A stretch of DNA of 64,000 nucleotides from NCBI GenBank assembly GCA_951804945.1, contig OX638150.1:56482001-56546000 (forward strand), written 5' to 3'. Below, in pieces: positions 3,953-64,000 of this stretch. Origin of the DNA: Podarcis cretensis (Eukaryota). Position 1 is the first letter of the stretch. Each line of letters starts with the position of its first letter. Under the pieces are notes generated by a model. The model had not been told where the DNA came from. It ran no database searches and saw only the letters and a list, made by a program, of their open reading frames with translations. The position numbers and the translations under genes are program-made.

Positions 3953-4131
3953 AGATAATCCTGTACATGATGAAGTCCTATCAGATATAACTTGATAGGA
4001 TTTCCATTGAATAGCAACAATTGCTCATTATGACCATGATGTCAAGATTGATGTGGTTTTGCGATTTTGAGGAGGGTGGAGATTCTGCACATACTGACAG
4101 CTATCTTTTTTTCCGTTGTTACACATATAAA
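3953..4131 (+). promoter_or_regulatory. Proximal promoter of IL13-like copy A
   Basis: TATAAA 4126-4131; GATA CTATCT 4101-4106; RUNX TGTGGTT 4052-4058; AP-1-like TTGCTCA 4021-4027; NFAT TTTCCA 4001-4006. All are retained in the copy B promoter. Confidence 0.7.
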
Positions 4132-4196
4132 TATTCAGCTTGCAAAGGAGCAACAAGCAGTAAGGATTGTTGTAGTGCCTAATAATCAAAAGGACA

Positions 4197-4355
4197 ATGC
4201 CCGCGTTTCTGAAAGCAATCCTGGCAATCTGCTTGTTGGTAGAAATTGTTTCTACCACTCCATTAAGACAACCAGAACTGATGGATGATAGAAAATTTAA
4301 AATATATGTTGCAAAGTTAAACACCAGCCTTGGTCCAGCATGTGAGAGCTTAAAG
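4197..4355 (+). CDS. IL13: IL13-like copy A exon 1 (signal peptide + helix A)
   Basis: ATG at 4197; 53 codons; strong donor AAG|GTAAGT. Confidence 0.9.
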
Positions 4356-7300
4356 GTAAGTCAAATATCATATTTGTTTTTATTGTCATGTCATTATGTA
4401 TTGTGGCCAATTTATTGCTCATTGAACAATCACAAAGAAGGCAAGGAGGATGTTTTGGTATTAAACCAACTTCCGTTGGCAAAATGTGCTAACTTTTCTC
4501 TCTCTCTCAAAATGTGCTAAGAAGAAGAAGAAGAAAAGGGGTTGTACTTTTTTACACAACATAAATGGTTCAATAGGATGTATCACTTTACTCAATATTC
4601 AGATTCATTCCTTGGAAGCATCAGTGTTTTATCTTTCTAGGAAACCTTTAACAGCAGCATGTTGATGATGCTACTGATTCAGAATCTTTACCATGATTGC
4701 CACTTTAAAAAAGAAATATATTATTATTTCGCAAGTGTATAGGTATTAGACAAAATCTTCATTACATTATTAATTCTAAACCACATCAGAACTTTCCTTT
4801 CATTCAACAATGATTTCAGTAATTATTCACTGATGTATGCTGCTTTGAGCACTTTGCAGAAAGGTAGGATAGAAAGTGTAATACAGTAAGTAAATAACTA
4901 TTGGATAAAAATTGTGCTGCTGAAAGCTTAAGATATTTGCGAGTTGCTGTTAGCAGACCGGGCTAGTATCTAATCTAGAATCATAAGCATTAATATAAGC
5001 AGAAACCAGTAACAATTATTTAGTGAATATGTTCTCAGCATAATGAGACAACAAGAAAATCCCAAAGTAATCTCCTTTCTTTGTAAAATCTAGAACTGAA
5101 AGTTACAGGTCACACATTCTGCTCTGCCCAGGGACCAGAATCCAGAGATATGATGCTGAAGTCCATGGCTCTACAGTGTATCTTAGAGCAACTGGCACAA
5201 TATACATGATACTGGTCCACCTATTACCCCTTTAACCATGTTCCCTCATGCTGGTAGGCTTCTGTGCATGAAATATATAGGAACAAGCTGCCTGTAGTAG
5301 ATTGTTTTCACAAATGGATTCAGGTTTCTTCTATATGAGGGCAAATGTGTTCCCCTCACTCAGTTCAGCTTGCATGGTTTACAGTTTTAGGCTTTTAAAA
5401 AAAGTCTTCCTGAAGTCCTTTGCAGAACATCATTTTTTCAGGAACACCCAGCCTGGTATCTTTGACAAACCTACAAATGAGCCATGATGCTGGCAATTGG
5501 TTATCCCCAACATCTGGTAATCGCACATACGCTGCCTGTGGAGGTGAAGACTTCATGTTGAATTACTGTAGCCATTGAGAAACTCCTTCTCATTGAATCA
5601 GTCTGGTCCATGTTTGAAGAAGACCAGCAGGCACTTCCTTCCTCTAAAATGGAAATGAGAGCGGGTGCAGGAAACAGTTGCCCAAGGTATAGCCAGCGAG
5701 TCAGGACTCGCTTGCCAAAGTTTCCTTCCTTAACCAATTTATTGCCTTTTGTTTTACAGAATTCATCTTGTGGTAATGAAGAAATAAGAAAGATTCACTT
5801 TGAACATAATGCTGAGAAAATTGTAAGTGAAAAGTTTATGTCCTTAACCCAAAATGTATAGCTTGAAAGTGTTTAGCAGCAAAAACCGAGCTGTTTGGGG
5901 CATGTGGTGGGTGGGTTGAACAGACATTTAGAAAATCTTCTGTAATTTATATGGCTACTTTATTGAGGAGTGTCCACAGTTGGCATCAAGCCATTCTTTA
6001 TTCATTATTTTGAAATGCTACAGATTGCTGTCCATATAGTCAAAACGTTTGTTGCTATGGCAGGGCAGTGGAAGGGACACTAAATTATCAGGTTGCAAAA
6101 AAGCAATTCCACTGAAAAAGTTCTCAACACTTGGGAATTGCAACACAATTTCCCAGTACAGGATAAAATATAAATTATGCATTGGAGAAAATTGCATTTT
6201 TTCATAAATATCAATATATTACTTTTTATTTAATTTCTGCTTTCCTCAGTTATAAAGGTTTTTGGATGCGCTGCTTCTCAGCCTGCTACTTCATTTGATT
6301 CAGGCAGGTCTCTTCACAATACGTGATATGGTTCAGGCTCATAGAACTTTAAACCACTATGAAAAATGTGGTTGCAGAAATTTACAAACTATGTAATGCC
6401 TTGTTAGGGACGTGGGTGGTGCTGTGGGTTAAACTACAGAGCCTAGGACTTGCCGATCAGAAGATTGGCAGCTCGAATCCCTGTAACGGAGTGAGCTCCC
6501 ATTGCTCGGTCCCTGCTCCTGCCAACCTACCAGTTCAAAAGCACATCAAAGTGCAAGTAGATAAACAGGTACCACTCCGGTGGGAAGGTAAACGGTGTTT
6601 CCGTGCGCTGCTCTGGTTCGCCAGAAGTGGCTTAGTCATGCTGGCCACATGACCTGGAAGCTGTACGCCGGCTCCCTCAGCCAATAAAGCGAGATGAGCA
6701 CCGCGACCCCAGAGTCGGTCACAACTGGACCTAATGGTCAGGGGGCCCTTTACCTTTACCTAATGCCTTGTTATGACCAACCAGGGGTATGTAGGAAAGG
6801 AGCCTTGCTTCTGCAAGTGTTGAGGCCTTCTCATTAAATCTTTAAGCCTGTCTCAGTCTGGAGTACAAGGAAGTACTTAGTTGGGAGAGAAACAGCAGAA
6901 TCCTTGCCATGTCTATTCACAAGTTACGTAGTCCTACTGAATTCATTAGGCTTTACCCCACTGTAAGTGTGGTTAGAATTGCAGCCTAAAGCTGTATTGT
7001 CATACACTCTTGCCTTGAAGTAAGTCCTACTGAACTCAGGAGGGCTTACTTCTTAGAAGGCATGGTTAGGATTTCAGTCTTATAATCTTGGAAGTGACAT
7101 CCTTCTAGAATGACATGTGCTTTTTTTAGAATATTGTTATTACACTTCAAAGAACATGTTAAAAGACACACATGATTTTTGTAATTATGTATGCCATGCA
7201 AGTAGCTGACCAAGGGAAAAACATCAGGGATTGATCCGCTATAGCATGAAACATAAATAAATTAGATTATACATAATGATAACGAGTAACTTGAGTCTTG

Positions 7301-7963
7301 AGAACATTATCTCCCTAAACAAGTAGTTCAGTTAAAAAAAGTATTGTGTCAAGTAAGAAATATGAACAAACCTTGTACTCAGTATGTATTGAAGTAGTCA
7401 TTCTACATTCAACTTTGAACTTTTCTCAACAGTGTCAAACTTACAAAAACGTATTTTTGGATGTCCACTGTGCCCTCGATAAAGCTGCAAAAAGCAGTCC
7501 AACTGAATGCAACAAAACTGTGTCTAAGATCCAGCCACACCCAGAGCTGTTTGACAACCAAGTGAGTATTCTCTGAACATATATATTTCCCATCAGTGAG
7601 AATCTTGTGAAAATCCAATCTTATTCGCTGACTCAGATCTTATCAGATGTGCGGAAAATCTGAAGAGAGATTTGCTTAACCAAACTTTGATCCAGCAGGT
7701 CAGATAGGCCTTTTGCAAGGCACAGCCACAGAATGATGAGAGAAGCTCTCAGACCTGTGAGAATTAATCAGTACTTAAATACGATCAGAATATGGGCCAA
7801 GAAAATGTGTGGATGAGCCTGTGGTAGAGAAAAAGTTTGCCCCTGCCCCTTTCAGACACTATTGGGGAGGGATTCCAGTATGGGATATATTTTTACAAGC
7901 ATATTTATAAATTGCTTTATCTTGACCTAAGAGATCAGCTCTAATCATCTGTCTCTAAAACAA

Positions 7964-8001
<38 letters not shown>

Positions 8002-8222
8002 ATCTTCTGAATGAGCCAAAATTCGTTCAGGCCTGCTTCTACAAATTACCGTTTTGGTAGCTTTGCACTGTTGGCGCTGTGCAGCCATATCAACTCTCCT
8101 TTTGTCTCCCTTTAAAGACCAGCTGCACTTTACCAAACGATGATGACATGCTAATGAAGGAATTCTGCCTCAGACTACAAAACTACGTCAGCCACTTATA
8201 TGCCAACTGTGCGAAGAGCTAA
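4197..8222 (+). CDS. IL13: IL-13-like short-chain four-helix cytokine, copy A (151 aa, 4 exons: 4197-4355, 5760-5822, 7433-7561, 8118-8222)
   Basis: Four exons joined by phase-0 GT-AG introns (159+63+129+105 nt). Protein: MPAFLKAILAICLLVEIVSTTPLRQPELMDDRKFKIYVAKLNTSLGPACESLK|NSSCGNEEIRKIHFEHNAEKI|CQTYKNVFLDVHCALDKAAKSSPTECNKTVSKIQPHPELFDNQ|TSCTLPNDDDMLMKEFCLRLQNYVSHLYANCAKS*. It has a signal peptide, a TATA box, an AU-rich 3'UTR and a helix-D F-x-x-x-L-x-x-Y motif, and lies in the RAD50 locus. The signal LKAxLA..ExVxxTPL and the C-terminus resemble avian IL-13 as I recall it. Confidence 0.85.
5760..5822 (+). CDS. IL13: IL13-like copy A exon 2
   Basis: Acceptor ttttgttttacag, donor |gtaagt; 21 codons; 16/21 identical to copy B exon 2. 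Confidence 0.88.
6407..6760 (+). mobile_element. Sauria SINE in copy A intron 2
   Basis: 13-bp TSD taatgccttgtta; empty site in copy B (~17500). Confidence 0.9.
7433..7561 (+). CDS. IL13: IL13-like copy A exon 3
   Basis: Acceptor ttttctcaacag, donor |gtgagt; 43 codons; homologous to 15927-16046(-). Confidence 0.88.
7964..8000. repeat. (CTA)n microsatellite in copy A intron 3
   Basis: Direct inspection. Confidence 0.9.
8118..8222 (+). CDS. IL13: IL13-like copy A exon 4 (helix D, stop)
   Basis: Polypyrimidine tract + taaag acceptor; 34 codons + TAA; MKEFC shared with copy B. Confidence 0.88.
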   Translation, partial: TSCTLPNDDDMLMKEFCLRLQNYVSHLYANCAKS

Positions 8223-10196
8223 AAGTGTACATCATAAGGAGTAAGAAGATGTTTGTTTCATAGGAAACCATGGCATCTGACATTGTCCTGGAAACCAACA
8301 CTTCATTTGTGTTTGTTATTCTTAATGTCTGCTATCGAAAGGGTTAAAGCAATAATTAATTTCTCCAGTCAGGAAAAAAAGAAAATCAATAATAATACAA
8401 ACTACCCACATCAGTGAGCTCAAAGAGCCTTGAGCGTCATCATATGTATTTGGAGGCTGCTACCGTGGGCAAAGATTTGAGGACCAAAATCAAATCCACA
8501 GCATTCGTTTAAAGTCCATGGCTTTCTTCCAAAGAATCCTGGGAACTGTAGTTTGGTAATGGGGCAGGGAGTTGTCGCTTTGTGGTGGGTAAACTACAGT
8601 TCCCAAGATTATTTGGGGTCACAAAAGAACATCTCCTTAAAAAATGACTGGAACAAAGAACAGACCCTCCAAGTGCCCTATTTTCCAGGGACATTCCTGA
8701 TTTAGAGAAGCCATCTCGGTTTCTGATTTGATCCCAGAATGCCCCTTCCGATCTTCAGGAGGAGGGGGGGTTGTGGGATCACGACCCCGCCCACACTCAC
8801 TCTGCGAGGCTGGCGTCAGCCTCGCAGGAGACAGGGATTCACCCAATTAGCATACCCTGTGGCGCCAGCCAATTGGCTGGTGGCAGGGGCGGGCCTTCCT
8901 AGGGCCACTTAAGGTCAGGGCAGCCCCTGGCTCGCCCCCTTTCTTCCCTGGAGACGACGCAGAATGTCCTGCTTTTCCTTAAGACATCCCTATTTTAATT
9001 GGAGAAGTGTCGGAAGATATGGAGTCATCCGACCCCCAAACTGTATGAAAGCAACCCTGTACTATATAGGAAAGTTTTCTTAATGTTTCATGTATTATTA
9101 TATGTTGGAAGCTAGCCCAGAGTGACTGGGGCAACCCAGTAAGATGTGTTGGGTATAAAATTATCATTCTTGAATGGGACGTCCCTATTTTCATCAGAGA
9201 AATGTTGGAGGAGGGTATGAAAGAAGAAGAAGCTCTCTCGAAGTCTGGTTGTGCCCAAGTGTGGCAGCAGCAGCCTTTAAGTGCCCATCTAGGAACTGAA
9301 GGTGGAAACAGGTTGAACCAGAAGCAAAAAATTTAAGGCAAATATAGTACAGTACAGCAATATTCCTCCCTCTTATCCCACAGGAGAGTCCATGGATTTA
9401 GGGCATTTTCATATGAGACACTTTTTCAGACTGCATGTACACCGTGCATTTCAGTCAGATGGCTTCCCCAAAGAATCCTGGGAATTGTAGTTTGTTAAAA
9501 GTGCTCTGTGTGGGTTGCATTTTCTATCAAGGCATGCCTTAACATCAGCAGGGAATCCATTTTTATTTTATTTCTTAAATTTGTTGTTATATAGTTGCAA
9601 CTGACGACTTTTTACCAAGCAGTAGTTTAACATGGTGTGTGTGTATGTCACTGCTGTCTGATTTGTTCTGTCAAGTCCTACAGAAAATGTCAGCATAAAT
9701 CTTGGGCAGATGTGTGGTAAAGTGGTTGTCTGCATCTATCCATCCATTCATAAAGATGGAGGGGTGTGTGAAAGCACTGAAATAGAGTTTATTTCCTCTT
9801 AGCAGTTTCATGACATTGGGTTGAACTTATTTATTTCTGTTCTATTTAACATATTTAATATTTTATATTATAAATATTTTCTTATCAAGATTGGAAAACA
9901 AACCTGTGATTAAGTGTTACAATAAATGAGATATTTTGTTGAAATTAGTAACCATAAGAGTTATGACCATTATTTAATATTTAAAACCATAGTTATATAT
10001 TTTCTTGTTTGTAGTTATGTAATTGGTACTGTTATTGTTTTCATAAACTTTCCTCATTTTGTACTGAAGAATAATTTTATACATGTTTGTACTGCAATTG
10101 CATTTATTCTGTATTTAAATTGATATGGATTTCTTATGTGCTGTTTTTATATTAAGTTAATAATGAAAATATTTAAGTTACCGAACACACAATAAA
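8223..10196 (+). other. AU-rich 3'UTR of copy A ending at polyA signal AATAAA 10191-10196
   Basis: Several ATTTA/TTATTTAT motifs at 9560-10180; the AATAAA context is conserved with copy B. An earlier AATAAA is also present at 9921. Confidence 0.6.
8661..9219. mobile_element. Non-autonomous DNA transposon in copy A 3'UTR with a GC-rich internal insert
   Basis: Inverted ends CAGACCCTCCAA ... TTGGAG(GAG)GGTATG; absent from the copy B 3'UTR. Confidence 0.6.
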
Positions 10197-11036
10197 ATCT
10201 TGAGCAAGAGTGAAGTGTTTTCCTTTGATTTTAAGAAGACTTGGATCGAGTCATTTGTGAAGCGGTATGAATTGGGCTTGACATTACACTTTATTGGGTA
10301 AAGCTGAACCAGCAACAAGGATTACAAACCCAATAAATTTGTTCACCTCACACTTTTCAGTGCATTTGCTCATCACTTTCCTAAGCACAAAAATATGTAT
10401 TTTTTAAAGATTTATTTTGCTAGGGTGATGGAGTGCTTTAATTCACTGTAATTGTGCACACTTAAAATTCGAGTATTCTTTTTACTAAAACGAGCCCAGG
10501 AAGGGAAATATATCTACACTAATACAAATAAGACTTCTAGAAACAGTTTAAAACAACCTTTTAAAACAGCTTAAAGCTCTTCAAAGCGATCACCTGCTCT
10601 GCAACTAAGTACTATGCACTTGAATCCCTCGCACAAAATTGTGACACTCTGGAGAATGGTCACATTAAGCCTTGGCCTAATCGTCCTCAGTATTCCCATT
10701 TGTACAGTGAGATGGAGGGTGGACTGTGTTTTACAAGGCCTTCTGTGTGCTTAATTCTGTAAATACGTACGTCAAATTCGTGAACATTTGTTTCTGCTTG
10801 TGGCACACTCCTAATTGCACTGGACTCAACTTGCCATTCTCCACTAGCCACCCTGGTCTCACCTCTGGGCTATTGCCAGGCTTCACCTCAAGCCCCACTC
10901 CTGATAGCAACACTTTGTCAAAAACACTAATAAACAATTAAAGAAAAGAAGAATTGCACTGGTATTGCCCTGAATGGATGAGTGGGTGTCTATCAGTGTG
11001 TGGAAATGCCGGGATGGTGAGAAGAGTTGGACTCAC

Positions 11037-11052
11037 CAGCGCCACCTAGCTG
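11037..11052 (-). promoter_or_regulatory. Candidate CTCF binding site
   Basis: rc CAGCTAGGTGGCGCTG resembles the CTCF core CCASYAGRKGGCRS. Confidence 0.5.
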
Positions 11053-11157
11053 CTCTTTTCCTCTTGAGCTAGCTTTGACATTCAGCACCAAACAGTTATA
11101 CAGTAATCCATCTGCGCTCTCTCGCTCTCTCTTTTGTTCTCTCTCCCCCTCCCTCCA

Positions 11158-11213
<56 letters not shown>
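11158..11213. repeat. (AAT)n microsatellite
   Basis: Direct inspection. Confidence 0.95.
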
Positions 11214-11214
<1 letters not shown>

Positions 11215-11397
11215 TCACCCTCAACATGTTTTCTAATTGCCTTGTAAGTCGGAACTGTCTTATAAACAAATGTCACCACTCCCAGTCTTGTCATAACTCG
11301 GACAACTGCTGTTGTCGCAGGAAACCCGCCCCCCCCCCAATCATTCAGTTTGTACAAACTTCACACACACACACACACACTACATATGCTACGCTTC

Positions 11398-12089
11398 TGT
11401 TATAAATTCATAGAAAAGCAACCATGCATCGGATTTGCACTGTTCCACTTTTATTTTACTCCATGAAGGAAGGACTACAAAATGGGGAAGGTTTGATACA
11501 GGGCAGCCATAATCCCTTGAGCATACCAGCACATACACAGGAGCCCTGCCCAGTTGCTATGCCAACCCTGATGGTCCTAGACAGAAGACCATCAAGATCA
11601 CAAAGAACTTGCATATGGGAGTGGATTCAGCACTGACTGGAACAAAGGACAATAATCAGCTCTTCCCTCTGGGGGCAGGAAACTACAAATTCCCCTCTGT
11701 CACCTGGAAAGTACTCATGGGGAGGGGGAAAGGGGGAACCAGCCAGGTGACAGGACACTCAGGTTACCACCGCAACTCCTCCCTCAACCCCTCCTTTCTG
11801 TGATGAAGGTGTGGTGTATCTGAGGGGTGGTCTTAGGTTACACCCCTTCTGTGATGTATGTATGATGTTTCTGGGGGTGGTCTTGATCTACAGGGTGGCA
11901 ATTTCAAAAGTCTTTATAAGGCCTTGCACACCATTTTTCTGGGTCCTTCCTCTCTCCTGCAAGTGAGGGGAGCACCCTGTTGCAACAGTTCAATAAAGGC
12001 CAAGCCTACAGGCTGCTGTTTTGCTCCAAGTTATCCTGGTTGGTGTCTTTGTTTTTGTCCAAGGGAGCCCTCGGATTTTTCCGTTAACA
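11398..12089 (+). mobile_element. Probable solo LTR
   Basis: TGTTA...TAACA inverted termini, TATAA 11915-11919, AATAAA 11992-11997; no clean TSD. Confidence 0.55.
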
Positions 12090-13994
12090 CTGTCTCTCTC
12101 CTAACAAAAGTCTTTCTCATTCTCTCTTTCAGTTAGTGGGAGTACTGACTTGCCTCTCCAATGCCTTATCTTGATGGCTTATAAGGAAAGCCCACCACCC
12201 TTATTACTGTACTTTCTTATGCTGCAGTCTTACCCAAAGCCCACATCCCTTCTCATGACATAACACATTCCTAAACACACTTAACTTCTTAAAGGACACT
12301 TGAAGGAGTAATAATAACTACACAGGTTCAGGTTTCTCTGCAGTCCTTGCATAGCCTACAATTGCCACGCAAATGTTGGGACCTTTGCAAAAATGCTTAA
12401 GCCATCACGGCTTCTCACTTTGTCATACAGAGTCCCAGGACTGGTACACACCAGGGCGAGCTGGGGATGGGGAAGGAGAGATTGGTGTAGGAAGTACTCA
12501 CAGAGTGACGGAGGATGGTGAGGCAATGGGACACAAGAACCAGAGCAGCAGGACCCATCTCCAAGGACAGAGAAGCCCCTGTCTCCTCAAACACAGCAGG
12601 CTCTGAGGCATAGGGAGCAGAAAGCTGTCCAGGTGGGGCTCGCTAGCTCTGAGGGGAGGCATGTGATTCCTTAGCTGGAGTAGGCTGAGAGCAGGTGAGG
12701 CTCACTTGCCTCATCAAGCCCACATGCTGCAATCAGCATGCAGAGTACAGAAGGGCAGCGGAGCTGTGTCTGCTCAACTACTTGGATACTTCAGGATCTC
12801 TGAGGGACTGTGCTTTGGTTTGGACTTTGGCCATGTGGATTGACTCCGGACATACCTGTCGTATTGTCTTGCTGCCAGGTAGGCCAGGGATTTGGGACAG
12901 GTGTGCAGGTGATTCAACCAGGATTCACCACAGCACCAGAATGCTGCAGTTGCTTACACAGTCCTAATTTGCTCAGAAGTTTGAAACACTTAAGAAAAAG
13001 GGAGGCTTGTGTATCCTTGAACTCAAAAGCTTATATGTCCCTGGTCCCTAAAACAAACATTGGCGTACCTCATATCATAAACCTGTGCAATTGCAACAAT
13101 AATACTCACATACTATAGTCTATATATACACACACACAACCCTATAGTTAGTTGTATTATTGATTTGGTGTTTTCTTTTGCCCTCAGGCTTCCCTTGCAC
13201 ACAATACATAAATTCAAAGACTTCTGTGTTTAAAATGCTGCAGTTTTGTGTGTTTACTCTAATAACTTTGGTACCTGAACAGGAGAAAACGTCCAAGCAG
13301 TGATACTGATGTAGAATAAAGTGTTCCCATTTGCACCTGAGGAATGTTGGAGGGTGAGGCCTGGCACAAAGTATCTGAGGGTTAAGTTGTCAGATACCAC
13401 TCTCTCATTGTAATATCTCTTTCACATTTCCCTTGCGGGGGCCAGGCTTCTCTCATACCCATGGGCAAAGTCCAGCTGCAATCACAATTGCAAATAAGGA
13501 CCCTCCCGTGTGGAAGTTCCTGAGTGGGGCTTGAAGAGGAGCTTATGATGGTGCAGAGGTAGACATACAGTAGGTGGCTGGTGGATAATGGGAAGTCAGG
13601 GATAGTGGAATTTAAGATGTTCCACGTGCAGAAACAAACGTTCATGAAATAGACCAGATATCTATGGAATTAAGAATGTGAAGGGCATTGTAAAAAGTAC
13701 TCTTTCCCAACGCTTCGTACAAATGGTAATAATGAGAGTGAGTAAGTTAAGGCTTAATGTAATCATTCTATGGGTACCTCCAGAGTCCAGGCTGTCACTA
13801 TTTTGCAGGAGGGATTCAAGTAGGCAATAAACCTTATTTGAAACTTGTATTAGTATTGATATGTTTGCCTCCCTGGGCGCCTTGAAGTGAATGCAATACT
13901 GGAATTTTAGGTTTGCAGAATGAAAGTGAATTAAAGCACTCTATCTCCCTAGCACAATGAATTGACCTAAAAAGCAAAGGCTAGTGTGAGGTGA

Positions 13995-14064
13995 GAACGC
14001 CAGGCGTTCTCTGGTCCATGGGGTCACGAAGAGTCGGACACGACTAAACGACTAAACAACAACA
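13995..14064 (+). mobile_element. BovB (RTE) LINE 3' end
   Basis: GTCCATGGGGTCACGAAGAGTCGGACACGACTAAACGACT + (CAA)n tail; TSD agtgtgaggtga. Confidence 0.85.
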
Positions 14065-14248
14065 AGTGTGAGGTGAACTAATTTATTTAGTTTGTGATCT
14101 TTGCTACAGGTTCAGATTGCCCAACGGAGTGTAATGTCAAATGGAAATGTAAACTGTTTCAAAAATGACTCTATTCAAGCTTTATGGAGATATTTTCATA
14201 AATATAAAGGGAAAACAATCAAGGGAAAACAGGAGTCTCGCTTGATAT

Positions 14249-15484
14249 TTTATTGTGCGTTTTGTTACTGAAACATTTTAATTCTCAACTTAATATATAA
14301 AAGGCACATAAGAAAACCATATTAGTTTAAATATAGTATTAATTTAATTGTAATACAAACATGTATAAAATAATTATATAGTACCAACTTAGTAACGGTG
14401 TCAATAATATAACTAAAAAGAATACAATATGTAACTTTAACTATAACTTTAAATATTAAATAATGGCCACAACTTAAAAGTCTTACTGTTACTGATTTCA
14501 ATAAAATATTTCTCTCTAGATGTGCTCAGCATTATTGCATCACTTAATCACAGGTTTGTTTTCCAATGTTGATCAGAAAATACTTAGAATATGCAACATT
14601 AAATATGTTAAATAGAACAGAAATAAATAAGTTCAACCCAATGTCATGGAACTGCTAAGAGGCAATAAACACTATTTCAGTGCTTTCACACACCCCTCCA
14701 TCTTTATGAATGGATGGATAGATGCAGACAACCATTTTACAACACATCTGACCAAGATTTATGCTGACATTTTCTGTACAACTTGACAGAACAATCCAGA
14801 CAGCAGTGACATACACACATGCACCATGTTAAATTACTGCTTGGTAAAAGGTCATCAGTTGCAGCTTTATACTAAAAACAACACAGAATAGCAAATAACA
14901 AAGAATAAGAAATAAAATAAAATGTGATTGCCCTTAGATGCTCAGGCATGGCCATACAACGGGACACTTCTCCATTAGAACAACCCAATTTAGGGACAAC
15001 TGTTTCTTCATGGTTCAGTGGCTTTTTTTTTTTTTTTTTTGGTTTTAGGAGATGTCAGAGATCTTTGCCCTTTCTACTCTCCAGCCCCCACACCCAAAAT
15101 TCCAGGGAACTGTAGTTTACCCATTACAGAGCTATAATTCCCAGCCCCTAACAAACTGCAGTTCCCACGATTCTTTGGTGGAAAGCCATGTGCTTTAACT
15201 GTGCTATAAGTGAATGGTGTGGATGTGACTCCAGTCCTCAAATCTTTGCGCAAAACATCAACCTCCAAATACATATGGCGAAGCTCAAGGGGTCTCTGAG
15301 CTCGCTGCTGTGCGTTAGATTGCATTATTATTGATTTATATTTCCTGGCTTAATAAATTAATTGTTGCATTTCCCTATTTGACTGCATACATTAAGAATA
15401 ACAAACATGAATGAGTTGTTGGTTTCCAGAACAATGTCGGGTGCCATGGTTTCTTATTGGGGGAAAAAGAGATCCTCCTAGTTC
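14249..15484 (-). other. AU-rich 3'UTR of copy B ending at polyA signal (rc 14249-14254)
   Basis: Homologous to the copy A 3'UTR; cacAATAAAat context shared. Confidence 0.6.
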
Positions 15485-15604
15485 TTATGAAGTACATTTT
15501 TTCTTGTCCACGTAGCAGATATGTAAGCTTCTGACGTAGTCCAATAGAGCTGGACAGAATTCCTTCATTGGCCTGCTACCAATGTTTGGCAAAGTGCAGT
15601 TGGT
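15485..15604 (-). CDS. IL13: IL13-like copy B exon 4
   Basis: cttcttttaaag acceptor; 39 codons + TAA. Confidence 0.88.
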   Translation of the reverse strand, partial: TNCTLPNIGSRPMKEFCPALLDYVRSLHICYVDKKKCTS

Positions 15605-18600
15605 CTTTAAAAGAAGATGGGGGGGGAGGAGAGTTAAATTGACCATACAATTCCAACAGTACAATGCTAATAAAATGGTAATTAGGAGGAGGAGGCCTGA
15701 GCTTATTTTGGCCCATTGAAAAGATTTATTTTTTATTGGTTTTCCCGACAGTTGATTAGAGCTGACCTCTCAGGTAAAGTAAGTTAAAGCAATTTGTAAA
15801 TACATTTGTAAAAATATATCCCAACCCACCGAGAATCCCTTCTGAACGTTTAAAAAAGGGGGCGCAAACTATTTCCCTACTATGTCTCACTAATGAGAAA
15901 TATATACATTTACAAAAAATACTCACATGGTCTTCATACAGAGAGTCGGATGGAAGCATATTTGATACAGTGCTGTTGCAAGCACTTTGAGAGACATTTT
16001 TCAGAGCCTCCTTGACTTGGCAAAATACTCTGCCGTAAGTTTTGCACTGTTGAAAAAAAGGTTTAAAATTGAATGCAGCATGACTGCTTCAACGCAGTTT
16101 GAATGCAAGGTTCATTCATTTTTTTTGTCATTTGAGGCGATACCTTTTTATTGCACTATCTGTTTAGGAGGAAAATGTTCTCTAGAATTCATATGTACAG
16201 TCATACCTCGGGTTGAACGTGCTTCAGGTTGAGCGCTTTCGGGTTGTGCTCCACGGCAACCCGGAAGTAACAGAGCGCGTCACTTCCAGGTTTTTCCGCT
16301 CACGCATGTGCAGACGCTTAAAATGATGTTACGCGCATGCACGGAAGCAGCAAAACGCAACCTGCGCACATGCAGATGTGCCGTCGCGTCTTACGTTCCA
16401 TTCAGGATGCGAACGGGGCTCCGGAATGGATCCCGTTCACATCCCGAGGTACCGCCGTATGTTGATCTGACAGATTGGTGCATGTTACTCATTATCGGTC
16501 CATATAATAATGCTATAGCAGATCTATTCCTGATGCTTTTCCCTAGGCAAGCCAGTTGCATTGTATACACATTTTCAATTATGCTGAGTATAATTTAATC
16601 TGGTTTTTGAAGTGCAATAGTGCTGTTCAGAAAAAGCATGTGCCCTTCTAGCAGGTTGCCAACCAGACACATGACATAGTAACTATGCAGGTGCCCCTGC
16701 AACCCCAGAACTCTGAGCGTCCTCTGGTATGTGCAGCTCTGGAAAAGGCATTCCCCTTCTTCTCCAGTGCGCTTCAGTGACATATATCAAATGATACATG
16801 TACACTAATCTTCTAGCATAACACAGCAAGAAGCGTGAGACATCGTAGAGCTAACCTATGTAATTATTTACACACTATGTACAGACAAAGGAGTCATGGC
16901 GTCCTCTTTCTCGAGCTCCGAGAGAAGAAACAGGCAGAAGTAAAAGCAAAAGTACAGTGGTACCTCAGGTTGAGAACTTAATTCGTTCTGGAGGTCTGTT
17001 CTTAACCTCAAACTGTTCTTAACCTGAGGTACCACTTTAGCTAATAGGGCCTCACACTGCCACCATGCGATTTCTGTTCTCATCCTGAAGCAAAGTTCTT
17101 AACCTGAGGTACTATTTCTGGGTTAGCAGAGTCTGTAACCTGAAGCGTCTGTAACCTGAAGCATCTGTAACCCGAGGTACCACTGTACAGTACAATAAGT
17201 ATATACAGCGGAAGAGATAAGACTGTCTTCCATTCCCGCACTCTTCTCAGAGAGGCATGTGATTTACACCAATCTCTTCTGCAGCATCGGAGGCATGAAA
17301 TACTAACAAGATGAACACCTGGAGACTTCAAGATTGAAGACTCCTTAGAAAAAGCCCCAGTGAGTTCCATATGACTTACTCCAAGGCAAGAATGTATGAC
17401 AGCAATAGGCTGCAATTCTAACAACATTTATCTGGAAGTAAACTCCAATGACTTAAGTAAGACAAGGCTCCTTTTCCACATACCCCTGGTTGGTCATAAC
17501 AAAGCATTTCATAGCTTGTAGATTTCTGCCACCACATTTTTCTTAGTAGTTTAAAGTTCTATGAGCCTGAACCATATCATGTATTGTGAATAAAATGAAG
17601 TAGCAGGCTGAGAAATGGCACACCCAAAAACTTTTATAACTGATGAAAGCAGAAAACTAAGTAAAAAGTAATGTATTTATTTATGAAAAATGATGCAATT
17701 TCCCCCAAAATGTAATCTAGCATTGTAGGTCACCCCAACAAATCTCCTGTACTGAGAAATTGTGTGGTAATTTCCAACTATGGAGAATGTTTTCAGTGGA
17801 ATTCCATTTTTGTGATGTGTTTTTCATTTAGTGTCCCTTCCATTGACCTGCCATAGCAACAAACACTTTGACTGCTTAGATAGTAATCTGTAGAGAAGGT
17901 CTCAAATAAAATGCACAAGTTGTGAGACTCCTATGAAGGTTCTCAAGGTCCAAATATAGCATTTCAAAATAATGAAGGAAGAATGGCTTGATGCCAACTG
18001 TGGGCACTCCTCAATAAATTAGCCATGGCTGATGTTTGAAAATTATGGAAGATTTTCTAAGTGTCCATTATGTCAAGGACATAAACATTTTGCTTACCGT
18101 TCGCTCAGCATTAGGTTCAAAGCGAATCTTTCTTATTTCTTCATTACCACAAGATGATTTCTGTAAAACAAAAGGCAATAAATTGGTTAAGGAAGGAAAA
18201 TTTTGGCAAGCGAGTCCTGACTCACTGGCTAGAGTTTGGGCAACTGTTTCCTGCTCCCGCCCTCATTTCCATTTTAGAGGAAAGAAGCAGGAGAAGTGCA
18301 TGCTGGTCTTCTTGACAGCCTTCAAACATGGACTAGGCTGATTCAATGAGAAAGACTGTCTTAGTGGCTATAATAATTCAACATGAAGCCTCTACCTGCA
18401 AAGGCAGGGTATGCTTAGTTGCCAGATGTTGGGGACAGCCAACTTGGGATGGCAATTGCCACCATCAGGGCTCATTTGTAGACTTGCCAAAGATATGAGG
18501 ATGGACGTTGCTGTGAAAAGGATGTTCTGCAAAGAACTCCAGGGAAAACAATTTTTTTTAAAAAAACAACAACCCTCATGCTGTAAACTTTGCAAGCTGA

Positions 18601-19726
18601 ACTGAGTGAGAGGAACACTTTTGTCCTCATAAAGAAGAAACAATATTTTGAAAACAATCTTCTACAGGCAGCCTGTTCCTGTATATTTCATGCACAGAAG
18701 CCTACCAGCATAAGGAAACATGGTTAAAGGGGTAATAGGTGGATTTGTATCATGTGTATTGTGCCAATTGCTCTAAGATACACAGGGAACGCTATGCAGC
18801 CATGGACCTCAGCATCATATCTCTGGATTGTGGTCCCTGGGCAGAGCAGGATGTGTGACCTGTAATTTCAGTTCTAGATTTTACAAAGAAAGGAGATTAC
18901 TCTGAGGTTTCCTTGTTGTCTCATTGTTCTGAGAGCATTCACAAAATTACCATTACCAGTTTCTGCTTATATTAATATTTATGATTCTAGATTAGATACT
19001 AGCCTGGTCTGCTTATAGCAACTAGCAAATATCTTAAGCTCTTAGCAGCAGCCTAATTTTTATCCTGAAAATGTACACAGTTATTTATTCATTACATTTT
19101 CCACCCCACCTTTATGCAAGGAGCTCAAGGTGGATACATCACTGAATGAAAGTTCTGATGTGGCTCAGGATTATAAAGTATTGAAAATTTTGTCTAGTAG
19201 CTGCACATTAACAAGATAATAATGTATTGCCTTTTAAAAGTAGTGAACGTTTTAAATATTCATTTTGATTATTTCAGTTCTGCAACATGTACAATACCAA
19301 ATTGGGTATCATTGTCAACATGCCTGCATGTTAAGTAAAGCAATACATCCTGTTGAACCATTTCTGCTGTGTAAGAAAGTGCTCCCTTCTTATTCTTAGA
19401 GAGAGAGCACATTCTGAGAGAGAAAGTAACAACATCTGGCTCCCATTAAGTTGATTCAGTAATAAATCTTTCCTCCTTGCCTTCTTTGCAATTGTTAAAC
19501 AAGCAATAAATTGGCTGCAAAACATAAAAATAAATAAATTATGTACCTCCAGGTTCTCGCATTCCGTAACAAGCCGTTTCTGTAATATTGTTAGTTTTCT
19601 TTGAAATCTGCACTTGTCCGTTTTCTGTACCTCTCTTCTGAACTTGCCTAGTTGTTTTAACGGAGTAGTAGAGATAATTTCTACCAGCAAACAGATTGCC
19701 AGGATTGCTTTCAGAAACACAGCCAT
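15485..19726 (-). CDS. IL13: IL-13-like cytokine, copy B (160 aa, 4 exons: 19726-19547, 18160-18098, 16046-15927, 15604-15485); syntenic IL13 position and orientation
   Basis: Phase-0 GT-AG introns (180+63+120+120 nt). Protein: MAVFLKAILAICLLVEIISTTPLKQLGKFRREVQKTDKCRFQRKLTILQKRLVTECENLE|KSSCGNEEIRKIRFEPNAERT|CKTYGRVFCQVKEALKNVSQSACNSTVSNMLPSDSLYEDH|TNCTLPNIGSRPMKEFCPALLDYVRSLHICYVDKKKCTS*. It is the first gene downstream of RAD50 and on the same strand, as IL13 is in mammals. Confidence 0.88.
15927..16046 (-). CDS. IL13: IL13-like copy B exon 3
   Basis: ttttttcaacag acceptor, |gtgagt donor; 40 codons. Confidence 0.88.
16198..16457. mobile_element. Tc1/mariner (Tigger-like) MITE in copy B intron 2
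   Basis: TA-flanked, imperfect TIRs CAGTcaTACCTCGG / CCGAGGTACcgCcG. Confidence 0.75.
16955..17185. mobile_element. Tc1/mariner MITE in copy B intron 2
   Basis: TA TSD; TIR CAGTGGTACCTC / GAGGTACCACTG. Confidence 0.9.
18098..18160 (-). CDS. IL13: IL13-like copy B exon 2
   Basis: ttttgttttacag acceptor, |gtaagc donor; 21 codons. Confidence 0.88.
19547..19726 (-). CDS. IL13: IL13-like copy B exon 1
   Basis: ATG at 19726; 60 codons; donor GAG|GTACAT at the position homologous to the copy A donor. Confidence 0.85.
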
Positions 19727-19930: not shown

Positions 19931-20388
19931 GCAAGCAGGGCTTGCGTGAAGAAGGTTGTCTTTGCCTTGGCCCTAAAGCTCAATTAGAATGTCCAGTTGG
20001 TTTCAAGGTCCAGTTCAGAGTTCTGGTATTATCTATCAAAGCCAGGATCCCCTTAAGCAGGCTCATGCGGGGCGATGGGGAGCTGGGCACACTTGACCCA
20101 GGCCTTGGAGGGCTAAGCTGGCAGGCAGGGGAGGGGGCGCCAGGGACCAGCTGCTTTTCTGTTTGAGTTTATAAAATATCTGCATCAGAGGCCTTTTCAA
20201 AATCTGCCTGCCTATTGATCTGAGGTGGGTGGTAAGGAAAGGGTCTTCTTGGTGGCAGTGGTCTAGTTATTGAACGGCCTTCCACAAAAGGCCCACTTAT
20301 GTTAGGATTTTGGTCACAAACCTTTTGTTTTCCCAGGCCTTTTAGCAACTATTATTTTTACTGCTTCAGTTTTGACTATATATATGTA

Positions 20389-20622
20389 CAGTGGTACCTC
20401 GGGTTACAGACGCTTCAGGTTACAGACGCTTCAGGTTACAGACTCTGCTAACCCAGAAATTGCACCTCAGGTTAAGAACTTTGCTTCAGGATGAGAACAG
20501 AAATCGTGCCATGGCGGCAGTGTGAGGCCCCATTAGCTAAAGTGGTATCTCAGGTTAAGAACAGTTTGAGGATAAGAACGGACCTCCAGAACGAATTAAG
20601 TTCTTAACCCAAGGTACCACTG
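20389..20622. mobile_element. Tc1/mariner MITE (inverted relative to 16955-17185)
   Basis: TA TSD; TIR CAGTGGTACCT / AGGTACCACTG. Confidence 0.9.
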
Positions 20623-21724
20623 TATATGTATATATATCTTTGGGATTTTCTTGTTATCTCATTGTTCTGAGAGCATCCCTGTCTTTAAATATATATTATT
20701 TGCTGCCCTTTTGCTGGGTTATTGTTTCTATATTGCACATGGGTGTGTGTGTTAGGGGAGTGACAGTACCTCTGGTAGGGGACATGTTGTGCTCCTTCTG
20801 AGGTAGTTTATCCATCTTTGGTCCCCACTCTGCATTCAGCTCTCATTTGTGGCTCTTAGAAGCTGTCAGCAAGCAACACCCTTGGGAAACAGCTTTGACT
20901 TGTCAGCTAAACCAGTGAGGCATCTAATCATAGCCTGCATTTTTATTGAGGCTTGATCAGGGCCTGTATTTTAAAATGAGCTTAAAGATTTTCAAATGTT
21001 CATGCCAAGCAGAAGACCAGCTGCCTAAGAACCTTGGCAAGATGTTTATTCTCCTGGACAAGGGGGCCCCCTGATTTATAGCAGAAAACAATTCTCAAAG
21101 TCAAAGGGAATTACAGGCTGACAGCCAAGGTTACACTGACCCTACATATTACAGAAGATAAAAAAGCAGAGAAAAACATAATTAAGAGTGGGTAAATAGT
21201 AAAATAAAACCATGTGCCTCCCATTAAACTTGAGCCATATTTTTCTAAGGTTGAAAAGTCAAGAGCAGTGAAAAAGGCAACTGGCTTGGCTGGAGAAGAT
21301 AGGTTTTCTTTCTTTCTATTTTGAGGCTGGAAACTGTTCCTTACTTTGAAAAGGTTTATTCTTCTAAAAAGCTATCTAAGTTATGTATTAAATATATTGG
21401 CTTAAATGTAATTATGCAAAGGAATTAGAAGCTAAGAAATGTTAAATCCTTATGCTAGATTCTTATTTCATATAGTTGGAAGAGATCACAGGGGCCATCA
21501 GCCACCAGCCCAGCCCCCCTGCCAAGCAGGAAACATCATTAGAGCATACATATGGTTGTCAGGCCTTTGTTTAAAAGACCTTCAAGAGAAGGAGATCTTT
21601 CAATGATGATGTAAATTCAAGATCCTTGACATCTGTTTAAGATAAAAATTTGAGATTAAACCATTTGTTTTGGAGGGCAATAGGGCGAGGTGAGCTGGTA
21701 ATTAAGGTTCCTTGTTGAGACACA

Positions 21725-22423: not shown

Positions 22424-24210
22424 AATAATAATAATAATAATATTTATACCCCGCCCTTCTGGTTGGGTTTCCCCAGCCACTCTGTGCAAATCGCAGCATA
22501 TATCAGAACATTCTAATACATCAGACATTAAAAACGTTTTGATACAGGGCTGCCTTCAGATGTCTTCTAAAAGTCAGGTAGTTAATTATTTCCTTGACAT
22601 CTGGTGGGAAGGTGTTCCACAGGGCGGGCGCCACTACCGAGAAGACCCTATGCCTGGTTCCCTGTAACATCACTTCTTGCAGTGAGGGAACCGCCAGAAG
22701 GCCCTCAGAGCTGGAGTTCAGTATCCGGGCTGAACGATGGTGGTTGAGACGCTCCTTCAGGTATACTGGGCTGAGGCCATTTAGGGCTTTAAAGGTCAGC
22801 ACCAACACTTTGAATTGTGCTCAGAAACGCCCTGGGAGCCAATGGTCCTCACGGCCACTCTGTCACCAGTACAGCTTCCTCATTCTGGATTAGTTGTAGT
22901 TTCTGGGTCACCTTCAAAGGCAGCCCCATGTAGAGTGCATTGCAGTAGTCCAATCAGGAGATGCACCACTCTGGCGAGAGAGTCTGCAGGCAGATAGGGT
23001 CTCAGCCTGCGTACCGTGGAGCTGGTAGACAGCTGCCCTGGACACAAAATTGACTTGAGCCTCCATGGACATCTGTGAGTCCAAAATGACTCCCAGGCTG
23101 CACACCTGCTCCTTCAGGGGCCCAGTTGCCCCATTCAGGACCAGGAAGTCACCCACACCTGCCCACACCCGTCCCCCCAAAACAGTACTTCTGTCTTGTC
23201 AGGATTCAACCGCAATCTGTTAGCTGCCATCCATCCTTCAGCCGCCTCCAGAAACTCATACAGGACCTTCACTGCCTTCACTGGTTCAGATTTGAAGGAG
23301 AGGTAGAGCTGGGTATCATCCACATACAGGTGAATGCCCAGCCCAACACCCCTGATGATCTCTCCCATCAGCTTCATATAGATGTTAAAAAGCATGAGAG
23401 AGAGGACAGAGCCCTGAGGCACCCCACAAATGAGAGCCCAGGGGTCTGAACACTCATCCCCCAACACCACTTTCTGGACATGGCCCAGGAGGAAGGAGCT
23501 GAACTACTGTACAACAGAAGATTTGAGACTGGGTGATAGTTGATCATATTGGCCGGGTCCAAACATGTTTTTTTTTAAGAAGTGATTTAATAACAGCTTC
23601 TTTAAGCAGCTCTGGGAAGACTCTCTCACAGAGGGAGGCATTCACCACCCTGCAGAGCCCATCACCCAGTCCTTCCCAGCTCGCTCTTATGAGCCAGGAT
23701 GGGCAAGGATCAAGAAACAGGTGGTCGGTTTCACTTGTCCAAGCAGCCTGTCCACATCCTCGGAGGTAACAGATTGGAACTGATCCTACACAATTTGACC
23801 AGACAGGACTCCAGCACTCTCCTGTCCCAGCCCCACTACCACAGTGGAATCTACCTCTTTCCGAATCTGAGCAACTTTATCTGCAAAAAACTTTGCCAAA
23901 CCATTCCAGGAGATCTTTGGGTCTTCACCAGACCCCAATGGTGAAGGTGGTTCTGTTAGATTGTGGACCACCTGAAAGAGTCTCCTGCTGCTGTTTTCTG
24001 CTGATGCAATAGAGGCGGCAATGAAAGTCCTCTTCGCCGTCGCTATTGCCGCTTGGTAGGCTCGACGTGGAGCTCTTACCCATGTTTGGTCAGATTCAGA
24101 ATGACTTTTCCTGCACTAGCGCTCTAGCCGTCTCAGTGATTGTTTTATCGCCCTCAGTTTCAAGGAAAACCATGCGGCTGTCAGGGTTCCATGCAGTCGG
24201 AGAGGGCGCT
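22424..24210 (-). mobile_element. Degenerate L2 LINE (frameshifted RT)
   Basis: Peptides GVPQGSVLS, YVDDTQLY, RLRLNPDKTEVL in several frames; (TTA)n tail. Confidence 0.9.
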
Positions 24211-29268: not shown

Positions 29269-63244
<33,976 letters not shown>

Positions 63245-63731
63245 TTAACTGATAAATCAAATACATCATTTACCTTTCTTCCTAGACAAGAATAAGAAAT
63301 TGTAATTAATAATTGAAGAAAGCAGAGCAAATTCCTTTTCTATATCATTATAGGTAGTTAAAATACTGACACGATGCTTTTGTTATGATATATCATCCTT
63401 CAGCTAATTTTCATTCCCAGATCAGAAGACAGACTAGATCAGATCTATTGGATCAGATCAGATAGATCAGATTTTGTGAGTAGGAAACCTCAGGCAGGCC
63501 TAGGGGGCAAATTTGGCTCTCCATGCCTCTCTATTGGGCCTTCAGATGTACATCAATAGCCTTGCCCTCCATTGTTGTTTTTGCTTGGCTAGATAGAATA
63601 TGTCATTGAACTCTAAAAATATTTCTTGCTTGCCTGGAAGAGGGATTTGTGAGTGGAGTGTAGAATCTAGCCTACTGTATGTAGATAACATTCACTGCCA
63701 TTGATCCATCCACTTTGACCTCTGACCAACC

Positions 63732-64000
63732 AAAATGGTCAAAGGCCTGGAAACGATGCCTTATGAGGAACGGCTAAGGGAGCTGGGCATGTTTAGCCTG
63801 GAGAAGAGGAGGTTAAGGGGTGATATGATAGCCATGTTCAAGTATATAAAAGGATGTCACATAGAGGAGGGAGAAAGGTTGTTTTCTGCTGCTCCAGAGA
63901 AGCGGACACGGAGCAATGGATCCAAACTACAAGAAAGAAGATTCCACCTAAACATTAGGAAGAACTTCCTGACAGTAAGAGCTGTTCGACAGTGGAATTT
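63732..64000 (+). mobile_element. CR1 LINE fragment (runs off the window)
   Basis: MPYEERLRELGMFSLEKRRLRGDM, a canonical CR1 ORF2 segment. Confidence 0.9.

Follow-up and report, generated by a model that had tools for sequence, protein, structure and literature searches.

An Inverted Pair of Putative IL-4/IL-13-type Cytokine Genes beside RAD50 in a Wall Lizard: An Age Mosaic with Probable Adaptive Change in One Copy

Related systems and the lizard gene pair

The type-2 cytokine locus of mammals and birds is made up of RAD50, IL13, IL4, and KIF3A, and IL13 sits directly downstream of RAD50. The window analyzed here, a 64,000-nucleotide stretch of DNA from Podarcis cretensis (contig OX638150.1, positions 56,482,001 to 56,546,000), contains RAD50 exons and, beside them, two genes in inverted orientation, copy A and copy B. 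Both encode small secreted-type proteins, with a hydrophobic N terminus that was recognized by reading the sequence. With a probability of roughly 60%, most of the contrast between the exons and the noncoding DNA of this pair reflects an age mosaic from gene conversion, with adaptive change on top of it.

The teleost paralogs IL-4/13A and IL-4/13B lie on different chromosomes and come from genome duplication, whereas the lizard pair is local and inverted, with noncoding DNA shared between the copies. Like the lizard genes, the teleost genes are lineage-specific, and they have no one-to-one match to mammalian IL-4 or IL-13 (PMC5440397, PMC4905449). In mammals, rapid and positively selected evolution is described for IL-4 at its receptor-binding epitopes and for factors of the type-2 pathway (Koyanagi et al. 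2010, PMC3017759; Genome Biol Evol 2017, PMC5569703). The lizard pair resembles mammalian IL-4 in that a RAD50-adjacent, putative type-2 cytokine carries replacements above the neutral level, concentrated in helix A and present also in the C-D loop and helix D. In the complexes of IL-4 and IL-13 with their receptors, the contact sites lie in helix A, the C-D loop, and helix D. Members of this family signal through IL-4Ralpha together with gamma-c or IL-13Ralpha1 and thereby activate STAT6. The lizard genes differ in being a squamate lineage-specific inverted pair that is uncharacterized in the databases and has no Pfam IL4 or IL13 match. In addition, the lizard evidence consists of pairwise counts set against noncoding DNA and not of site models, and the receptor-touching residues are putative.

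Two further systems are close to this one. In the phospholipase A2 and three-finger toxin genes of snake venoms, the mature exons are more diverged than the introns and untranslated regions (UTRs), and silent and intron divergence is uniformly low. The lizard pair shares with them a similar signal peptide and similar noncoding DNA, diverged mature exons, and a replacement rate at or above the silent rate. It differs from them in its strongly diverged silent sites and flanking introns, its mosaic noncoding DNA, and its conserved exon 2. Duplicates that undergo interlocus conversion while selected sites diverge are treated by two-locus conversion-plus-selection models, and RHD/RHCE and palindrome arms are known cases. 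The lizard locus has the same inverted arms, apparently homogenized patches, divergence peaks on the functional exons, and identity rising away from them. Unlike in those systems, conversion in the lizard pair is putative, being deduced from the divergence pattern, and its youngest tracts have a distance K of ~0.08.

Divergence between the two copies

The inverted duplication has collinear arms at ~3999-10900 on the forward strand and 19930-13522 on the reverse strand. Each arm contains one intact four-exon gene, and the copies stand tail-to-tail. Copy A is on the forward strand (4197-8222) and encodes 151 amino acids, and copy B is on the reverse strand (19726-15485) and encodes 160. Between the arms is a spacer of 2.6 kb (10901-13521), which has no arm-to-arm BLAST match.

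The arms were aligned block-wise, anchored on BLAST. Noncoding identity between the copies is 79.1% over 4419 aligned columns, and it varies from 50 to 97% among 44 bins of 100 noncoding columns (chi2 test of heterogeneity, p = 7e-29). A preliminary description of this DNA had reported that the mature-protein exons are far more diverged than introns and UTRs, and its individual counts were reproduced almost exactly. Positions 5071-5170 and the reverse complement of 18798-18896 are identical at 96 of 99-100 sites, and 9681-9800 matches the reverse complement of 14657-14776 at 115 of 120. The signal peptides share 21 of 25 residues, the helix-A parts 7 of 28, exon 3 16 of 40, and exon 4 15 of 34 ungapped or 16 of 34 with a gap; only the nucleotide count for helix A changed, from 46/84 to 48/84 upon re-alignment. 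The generalization drawn from these counts did not hold as worded. The two noncoding segments that were quoted fall in the top two of the 44 bins by similarity, so that noncoding DNA is not generally ~96% identical, and exon 2, which encodes 21 mature residues, is not diverged (89% of nucleotides and 16 of 21 amino acids identical). The three diverged exon parts (helix A, exon 3, and exon 4) are ~61% identical, to be compared with the noncoding average of 79%, and not ~55% with 96%. Exon 3 is 59% and exon 4 67% identical at the nucleotide level, and the intron sequence adjoining the diverged exons is 68-76% identical. Where noncoding DNA is a mosaic, rate acceleration will be overestimated if exons are set against a handful of chosen intron segments.

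The Kimura two-parameter distance (K80) shows how the divergence is distributed along the arms. It is 0.17 in the promoter and 5'UTR and 0.15 in the signal peptide, and it reaches 0.64 in the helix-A part of exon 1 and 0.43 in the first 550 bp of intron 1. The rest of intron 1 has a value of 0.14, exon 2 of 0.12, and the start of intron 2 of 0.19. High values return just before exon 3 (0.42), in exon 3 (0.59), in intron 3 (0.39), and in exon 4 (0.47), followed by 0.23 in the 400 bp after the stop codon. Two similar tracts stand out from a baseline arm divergence of K ~0.35-0.45, and K is 0.08-0.19 in the similar parts of the locus. Tract 1 (4901-6406, paired with ~19060-17497) covers the middle of intron 1, exon 2, and the first part of intron 2, with K80 of 0.12-0.19 as against 0.39-0.43 beside exons 1, 3, and 4. 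Tract 2 (9588-9930, paired with 14871-14530) lies downstream of the gene, is 92% identical, and has a K80 of 0.08 (0.083). The exon-free inner end of the arm (9931-10900, paired with ~14530-13522) shows baseline divergence, with 73% identity (bins 63-80%) and a K80 of 0.335.

For the 102 codons of the diverged exon parts, with exons joined for this calculation only, silent divergence (dS) by the Nei-Gojobori method (NG86) is 0.635 (bootstrap confidence interval (CI), 0.39-1.09) and replacement divergence (dN) is 0.545, which gives an omega (dN/dS) of 0.86 (0.47-1.47). Among degenerate codons with a conserved amino acid, silent changes occurred at 12 of 38 in the diverged exon parts (6 of 16 in exon 3), at 0 of 16 in exon 2, and at 4 of 20 in the signal peptide. 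Silent divergence of this size agrees with the baseline noncoding K and far exceeds the K of the tracts; the duplication is therefore old. Most of the measured contrast between exons and noncoding DNA is consequently one of age and not of rate, since dS is high and selection on the protein can raise neither dS nor intron K. The preliminary description had named an old duplication with homogenized noncoding DNA, high dS, and dN/dS well below 1 as the outcome that would speak against accelerated evolution; high dS and apparent homogenization are what we find, but an omega of ~0.9 is not well below 1. Since the cysteines and core residues of the protein are invariant, an average omega near 1 would imply values above 1 at some sites.

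An excess of divergence in the exons themselves remains after this correction. The diverged exon parts differ at 119 of 306 sites (38.9%), compared with 208 of 750 (27.7%) in flanks of ±150 columns (p = 5.5e-4). This is a 1.4-fold excess, compared with roughly 10-fold implied by the earlier figures. Both flanks of each diverged exon part are more similar than the part itself, and the farther noncoding DNA lies from the closest such exon, the higher its identity (Spearman 0.63, p = 8e-5). Identity that rises away from functional exons is the pattern expected when selection removes homogenizing conversion tracts.

The noncoding tracts of high similarity are most readily seen as candidate products of arm-to-arm gene conversion. 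Contigs of four other taxa (runs X5, X7, X14, and X15) were placed on 4000-9999, and the noncoding divergence of these taxa inside and outside tract 1 is 1.0 and 1.05% for X5, 1.5 and 1.2% for X7, and 2.2 and 2.6% for X15. For exon 2 and the signal peptide, A and B share 71-84% identity, but their identity to homologs from Pogona, Vipera, and Lerista is only 19-36%, whereas in helix A and exon 4 the similarity between the copies does not exceed that of either copy to Vipera. The tracts are thus probably young and not slowly evolving, because the rate in tract 1 equals that outside in three of the four runs and because exon 2 and the signal peptide show no conservation with other squamates. Since the youngest tracts (K ~0.08) are much older than the 1-3% divergence of the sampled taxa, conversion may no longer be active. 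In exon 2 (5760-5822 in A, 18160-18098 in B), all 7 nucleotide differences are replacements, affecting 5 residues, and none is silent. Two of the changes in copy A, R to H and P to H, are derived on the lineage common to the window and X5 by comparison with Podarcis lilfordi and copy B.

The locus would have arisen by an old inverted tail-to-tail duplication of a gene for a secreted short-chain helical cytokine, directly downstream of RAD50. Conversion would then have homogenized the region from the middle of intron 1 through exon 2 into intron 2, as well as a tract beyond exon 4; the promoter and the signal peptide may have been affected too. Old divergence would persist in identity valleys whose lowest points are the exon parts encoding helix A, helix C plus the C-D loop, and helix D. 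Selection against conversion across the diverged exons may maintain these valleys, and the selected surfaces would be those that contact receptors.

Replacement changes in copy A and competing explanations

The stronger case for adaptive change comes from copy A in related lizards. Between the window and X5, the coding sequence of copy A (453 bp) has 11 replacement changes and 1 silent change, and the noncoding DNA has 32 changes in 3482 bp. For this one pair of taxa, dN is 0.030 compared with a noncoding divergence of 0.0092, which is 3.3 times as high (p = 0.0016). A gap-free contig piece of X5 (1096 bp, 4000-5095) shows the same, with 7 changes in the 159 bp of exon 1 and 5 in the 937 bp elsewhere (p = 5e-4), and X5 has 4 replacement changes in exon 3. 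With copy B as the outgroup, the changes private to X5 are 8 replacements and 0 silent changes, against 6-10 in noncoding DNA (p <= 1e-4). Conversion from copy B was considered as the source of these clustered changes and rejected, because none of them matches B.

Comparison with P. lilfordi places the replacements mainly in one region. Copy A differs from its P. lilfordi ortholog at 23 of 151 amino acids, including 11 of 28 in helix A, and copy B at 9 of 160 (p = 0.008). Nearly 40% of the helix-A residues of copy A thus differ between congeners. Helix-A sites 40, 46, and 53 each have three different residues across the window, P0003, and the P. lilfordi protein P0004. In all, copy A varies at sites 28, 29, 32, 36, 39, 40, 42-44, 46, 47, 50-53, 108, 110, 111, and 142. 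Between the paralogs the mature protein appears to evolve at about the neutral rate, whereas between related taxa copy A appears to evolve clearly above it, with helix A as the putative hot spot. Adaptive change is clearly shown in copy A alone, in the comparison with a single related taxon. Positive selection on the mature protein, as proposed in the preliminary description, is therefore supported mainly by the copy-A orthologs, and the paralog contrast on which it had been based is largely an age mosaic. At codon 43 of copy A (window position 4323), a T43A difference is common to X5, X14, X15, P0003, and P. lilfordi and is not found in X7, a run whose overall similarity otherwise puts it with X5. 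The pattern hints at an old polymorphism or at repeated change of this helix-A site.

Under a recent duplication with only a few percent of neutral divergence, all the extra divergence of the mature exons would have come from positively selected acceleration in the style of snake-venom toxins. This would account for the 96% identity of the two quoted noncoding segments, for the lower similarity of each diverged exon part relative to both flanks, and for the young appearance of exon 2 and the signal peptide. Protein selection, however, cannot raise dS or intron divergence, and dS is 0.64 with a lower bound of 0.39, silent sites are as diverged as replacement sites (12 of 38 codons silently changed), K is 0.39-0.43 in the adjoining introns and 0.335 in the exon-free inner arm, and the noncoding DNA is heterogeneous around a mean of 79%. 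We regard such a history as highly improbable. It is also very unlikely that the locus has one old age throughout and that the similar tracts are regulatory elements, such as an intronic enhancer, a promoter, and an mRNA-stability element, kept by purifying selection. The promoter with its TATA-like box is indeed 85% identical, ATTTA motifs lie within tract 2, the divergence of X14 in tract 1 is a quarter of that elsewhere, and X15 has a somewhat reduced divergence in tract 2. But tract 1 evolves as fast as other noncoding DNA in X5, X7, and X15, and a contiguous ~1.5 kb of intron at 84-93% identity would make a long enhancer. Amino acid identity of exon 2 and the signal peptide to other squamates is only 19-36%, and the 0 silent and 7 replacement changes of exon 2 are the reverse of what constraint would produce. 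An old duplication with patchy homogenization could also have been followed by relaxed drift without positive selection, and copy A might be becoming a pseudogene. The paralog omega of 0.86, with a CI that includes 1, agrees with this, as do the window's own lineage, which lacks a replacement excess, the RNA runs, none of which contains the locus, and the loss of five C-terminal codons, one of them for cysteine, from copy A. Relaxation caps dN at the neutral rate, yet dN of copy A is 3.3 times the noncoding divergence from X5, and the X5-private changes comprise 8 replacements and 0 silent changes against 6-10 noncoding ones. Neither the reading frame nor any splice site is disrupted in this DNA or in P. 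lilfordi, X5 is gap-free over 4000-5095, and the replacements cluster in helix A (11/28) instead of being evenly spread. Drift alone is therefore an unlikely explanation.

The reading we prefer, an age mosaic with adaptive change on top, has its own difficulties. On the window's own lineage, 2 changes are replacements, 1 is silent, and 18 are noncoding, which is no excess, so that the acceleration of copy A would be episodic. The ratio of replacement to silent changes is not significant by itself (binomial p = 0.28), and the case is one of dN against the noncoding rate. The differences between orthologs were taken from 40 of 254 difference rows, among which only X5 is complete or nearly so within contig pieces, and the X5 differences could be polymorphisms or the result of balancing selection instead of fixed adaptive changes. 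The argument for conversion uses the mosaic structure and rate comparisons and not a formal test, and the low-identity intron alignments include forced columns, which may inflate K. Unlike the other three taxa, which are uniform, X14 has a divergence of 0.9% inside tract 1 (5072-6302) and 3.4% outside it (6763-8552), as constraint would predict, or as a lineage-specific event would leave it; introgression, lineage sorting, and lineage-specific conversion are possible sources. None of the RNA runs contains the locus, and the family assignment is without sequence-profile support.

A wider proposal is more tentative, and we put it forward as a possibility that may well prove wrong. It holds that an unannotated IL-4/IL-13-type gene of squamates lies beside RAD50 and became an inverted pair in lacertids, that islands of divergence at the receptor-facing exons are kept by selection, and that helix A of copy A is engaged in an arms race or in receptor co-evolution. 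Were this true, copy A would be a functionally new type-2 cytokine or antagonist and not a redundant copy. The surplus of replacements in copy A among closely related wall lizards suggests that the interface of cytokine and receptor changed recently, perhaps driven by parasites. The pair would also be a compact natural case of homogenization by conversion combined with diversifying selection on a ligand surface. The preliminary description had further raised an altered use of a receptor or decoy receptor, or an arms race with parasites, as possibilities. IL13RA2 is among the orthologs that were not retrieved in squamates in a 2026 survey (PMC13005343), which bears on the decoy-receptor idea without settling it.

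Gene models, family assignment, and surroundings

All exon junctions of both copies follow the AG/GT rule and are in phase 0. Four phase-0 coding exons for a small secreted protein of ~130-160 amino acids are also typical of the IL-4/IL-13 family. Exon 1 of copy A (4197-4355) starts with ATG and ends at a GT donor; it comprises the signal peptide (4197-4271) and the mature helix-A part (4272-4355), where there is a 21-nucleotide insertion/deletion difference from copy B. Exon 2 (5760-5822, 21 amino acids) lies within tract 1 and is bounded by AG/GTAAGT, with 16 pyrimidines among the 20 upstream positions. Exon 3 (7433-7561, 43 amino acids) encodes helix C and the start of the C-D loop in the model. 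Exon 4 (8118-8222) has an AG acceptor and encodes 34 amino acids that include helix D, followed by the TAA stop codon at 8220-8222. On the reverse strand, copy B has a first exon of 60 amino acids (19547-19726), over which it is 95% identical to the P. lilfordi protein P0002, and a second of 21 amino acids (18098-18160) bounded by AG/GTAAGC. Its exon 3 (15927-16046) encodes 40 amino acids, and its exon 4 (15485-15604) encodes 39 and a stop codon, which makes it five codons longer than that of A.

The P. lilfordi proteins P0002 (160 amino acids, B type) and P0004 (152 amino acids, A type) are annotated with the same exon joins, which shows that neither the gene models nor the duplication are artifacts of assembly. 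Both are on records of 123,173,420 bp, taken as one chromosome. An assembly artifact or a haplotype copy was likewise rejected, given the 21% noncoding difference between the arms and the presence of both proteins in P. lilfordi. Where 8220-8237 in A is set against 15502-15485 in B, the 15 nucleotides that follow the stop codon of copy A match the last five codons of B without gaps and have a second in-frame TAA at their end. This match indicates that an AAA-to-TAA change cut five codons, including one for cysteine, from copy A. Copy A of P. lilfordi ends at the same point as that of the window.

The promoter and 5'UTR of copy A (4101-4196) contain a TATA-like box, CATATAAATAT, and the box is kept in the corresponding region of B (~19825-19727). 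Downstream of A, the ATTTA motifs of tract 2 are at 9829, 9844, and 9853 (span 9829-9857), and the first poly(A) signal (AATAAA) that A and B have in common is found at 10191 and 14254, respectively. The segment 9681-9800, which had been described as 3'UTR, begins 1.46 kb beyond the stop codon of A and past a repeat insertion of ~0.95 kb.

RAD50 lies upstream of copy B in the same orientation. Its exons (29280-59821, reverse strand) match the rad50 profile TIGR00606 (E 5e-36 to 7e-17), with profile positions 70-905 spread over five open stretches. The last exons, with the Walker-B/D-loop motifs LDEPTTNLD and VITHDE, are at 30.4 and 29.4 kb. The final one ends near 29.3 kb, so that the 3' end of RAD50 faces copy B, which begins ~9.5 kb downstream on the same strand. 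KIF3A is absent from the window.

For full-length searches, the database proteins P0002 and P0004 served as stand-ins for the window proteins, and the word search used stop-free read-through references that extend from exon 1 into intron 1, with scoring limited to the exon. Among 1.8 billion representative proteins, the only relatives are squamate proteins labeled uncharacterized or hypothetical, namely P0006 (Vipera latastei), P0007 (Pogona vitticeps), and P0008 (Lerista edwardsae). The Podarcis homologs carry labels of the same kind. The Lerista gene model wrongly fuses the last exons of RAD50 to the cytokine homolog. Exon-by-exon Pfam searches gave no match to IL4 (PF00727), IL13 (PF03487), or another relevant family. 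Full-length P0002 and an alignment of five members matched no cytokine family in Pfam, and for the exons and P0002 no family was found at E <= 10. Sequence searches of the PDB with a single protein and with a profile returned chance matches only and no cytokine.

The AlphaFold model of P0002 (mean predicted local distance difference test score (pLDDT) 65.5) is a helical cytokine bundle. In VIA-align its best match is IL-13 (3lb6_A; Z 8.4, root mean square deviation 2.9, 98 residues aligned), which is in effect tied with IL-2 (7.9), IL-4 (7.8), and IL-15 (7.6), all less than one Z unit lower. The top Foldseek matches are all gamma-chain cytokines, with E values of 0.04-0.3, and the neighbors in the protein Atlas are short-chain cytokines. 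The model of the copy-A ortholog (pLDDT 67.6) had no clear fold match in Foldseek. The locus, the RAD50-fused Lerista model, and the predicted fold together point to A and B as short-chain helical cytokine genes of the IL-4/IL-13 group. Because the fold alone cannot separate IL-4 and IL-13 from IL-2, IL-15, and IL-21, the assignment to this group follows from the RAD50 locus. Reptile type-2 cytokines are almost unknown, and placement at the RAD50 locus gives the squamate homologs a name and a testable function.

One-to-one orthology of A and B with mammalian IL-4 and IL-13 was considered and rejected. The introns of A and B can be aligned with each other, and in exon 3, in exon 2, and in the signal peptide each copy is clearly more similar to the other than to any other squamate homolog, which is not true of helix A and exon 4.

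Several repeats lie within and around the pair. Positions 6407-6761 and ~8554-9500 are insertions specific to copy A, and all four lizard runs contain them in high repeat numbers; the summed word depths of the first are in the millions, and positions 6463-6491 within it resemble a tRNA-derived short interspersed element (GGTTCGAATCCCC). The second stands between the stop codon of A and tract 2. An inverted repeat pair in two segments (17068-17189 with 20385-20506, and 16953-17067 with 20510-20624) is 93-98% identical, with one arm within intron 2 of copy B and the other upstream of its promoter, and the arms are probably two young copies of one mobile element. In the spacer just inside arm A, 11079-11402 is a long AAT/ATT-type microsatellite (~18 N or I codons). 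Finally, long open stretches with reverse-transcriptase-like motifs at 61067-62161 and 23138-23503 on the reverse strand and at 63726-63998 on the forward strand are probably fragments of long interspersed elements, within and beside the RAD50 introns.

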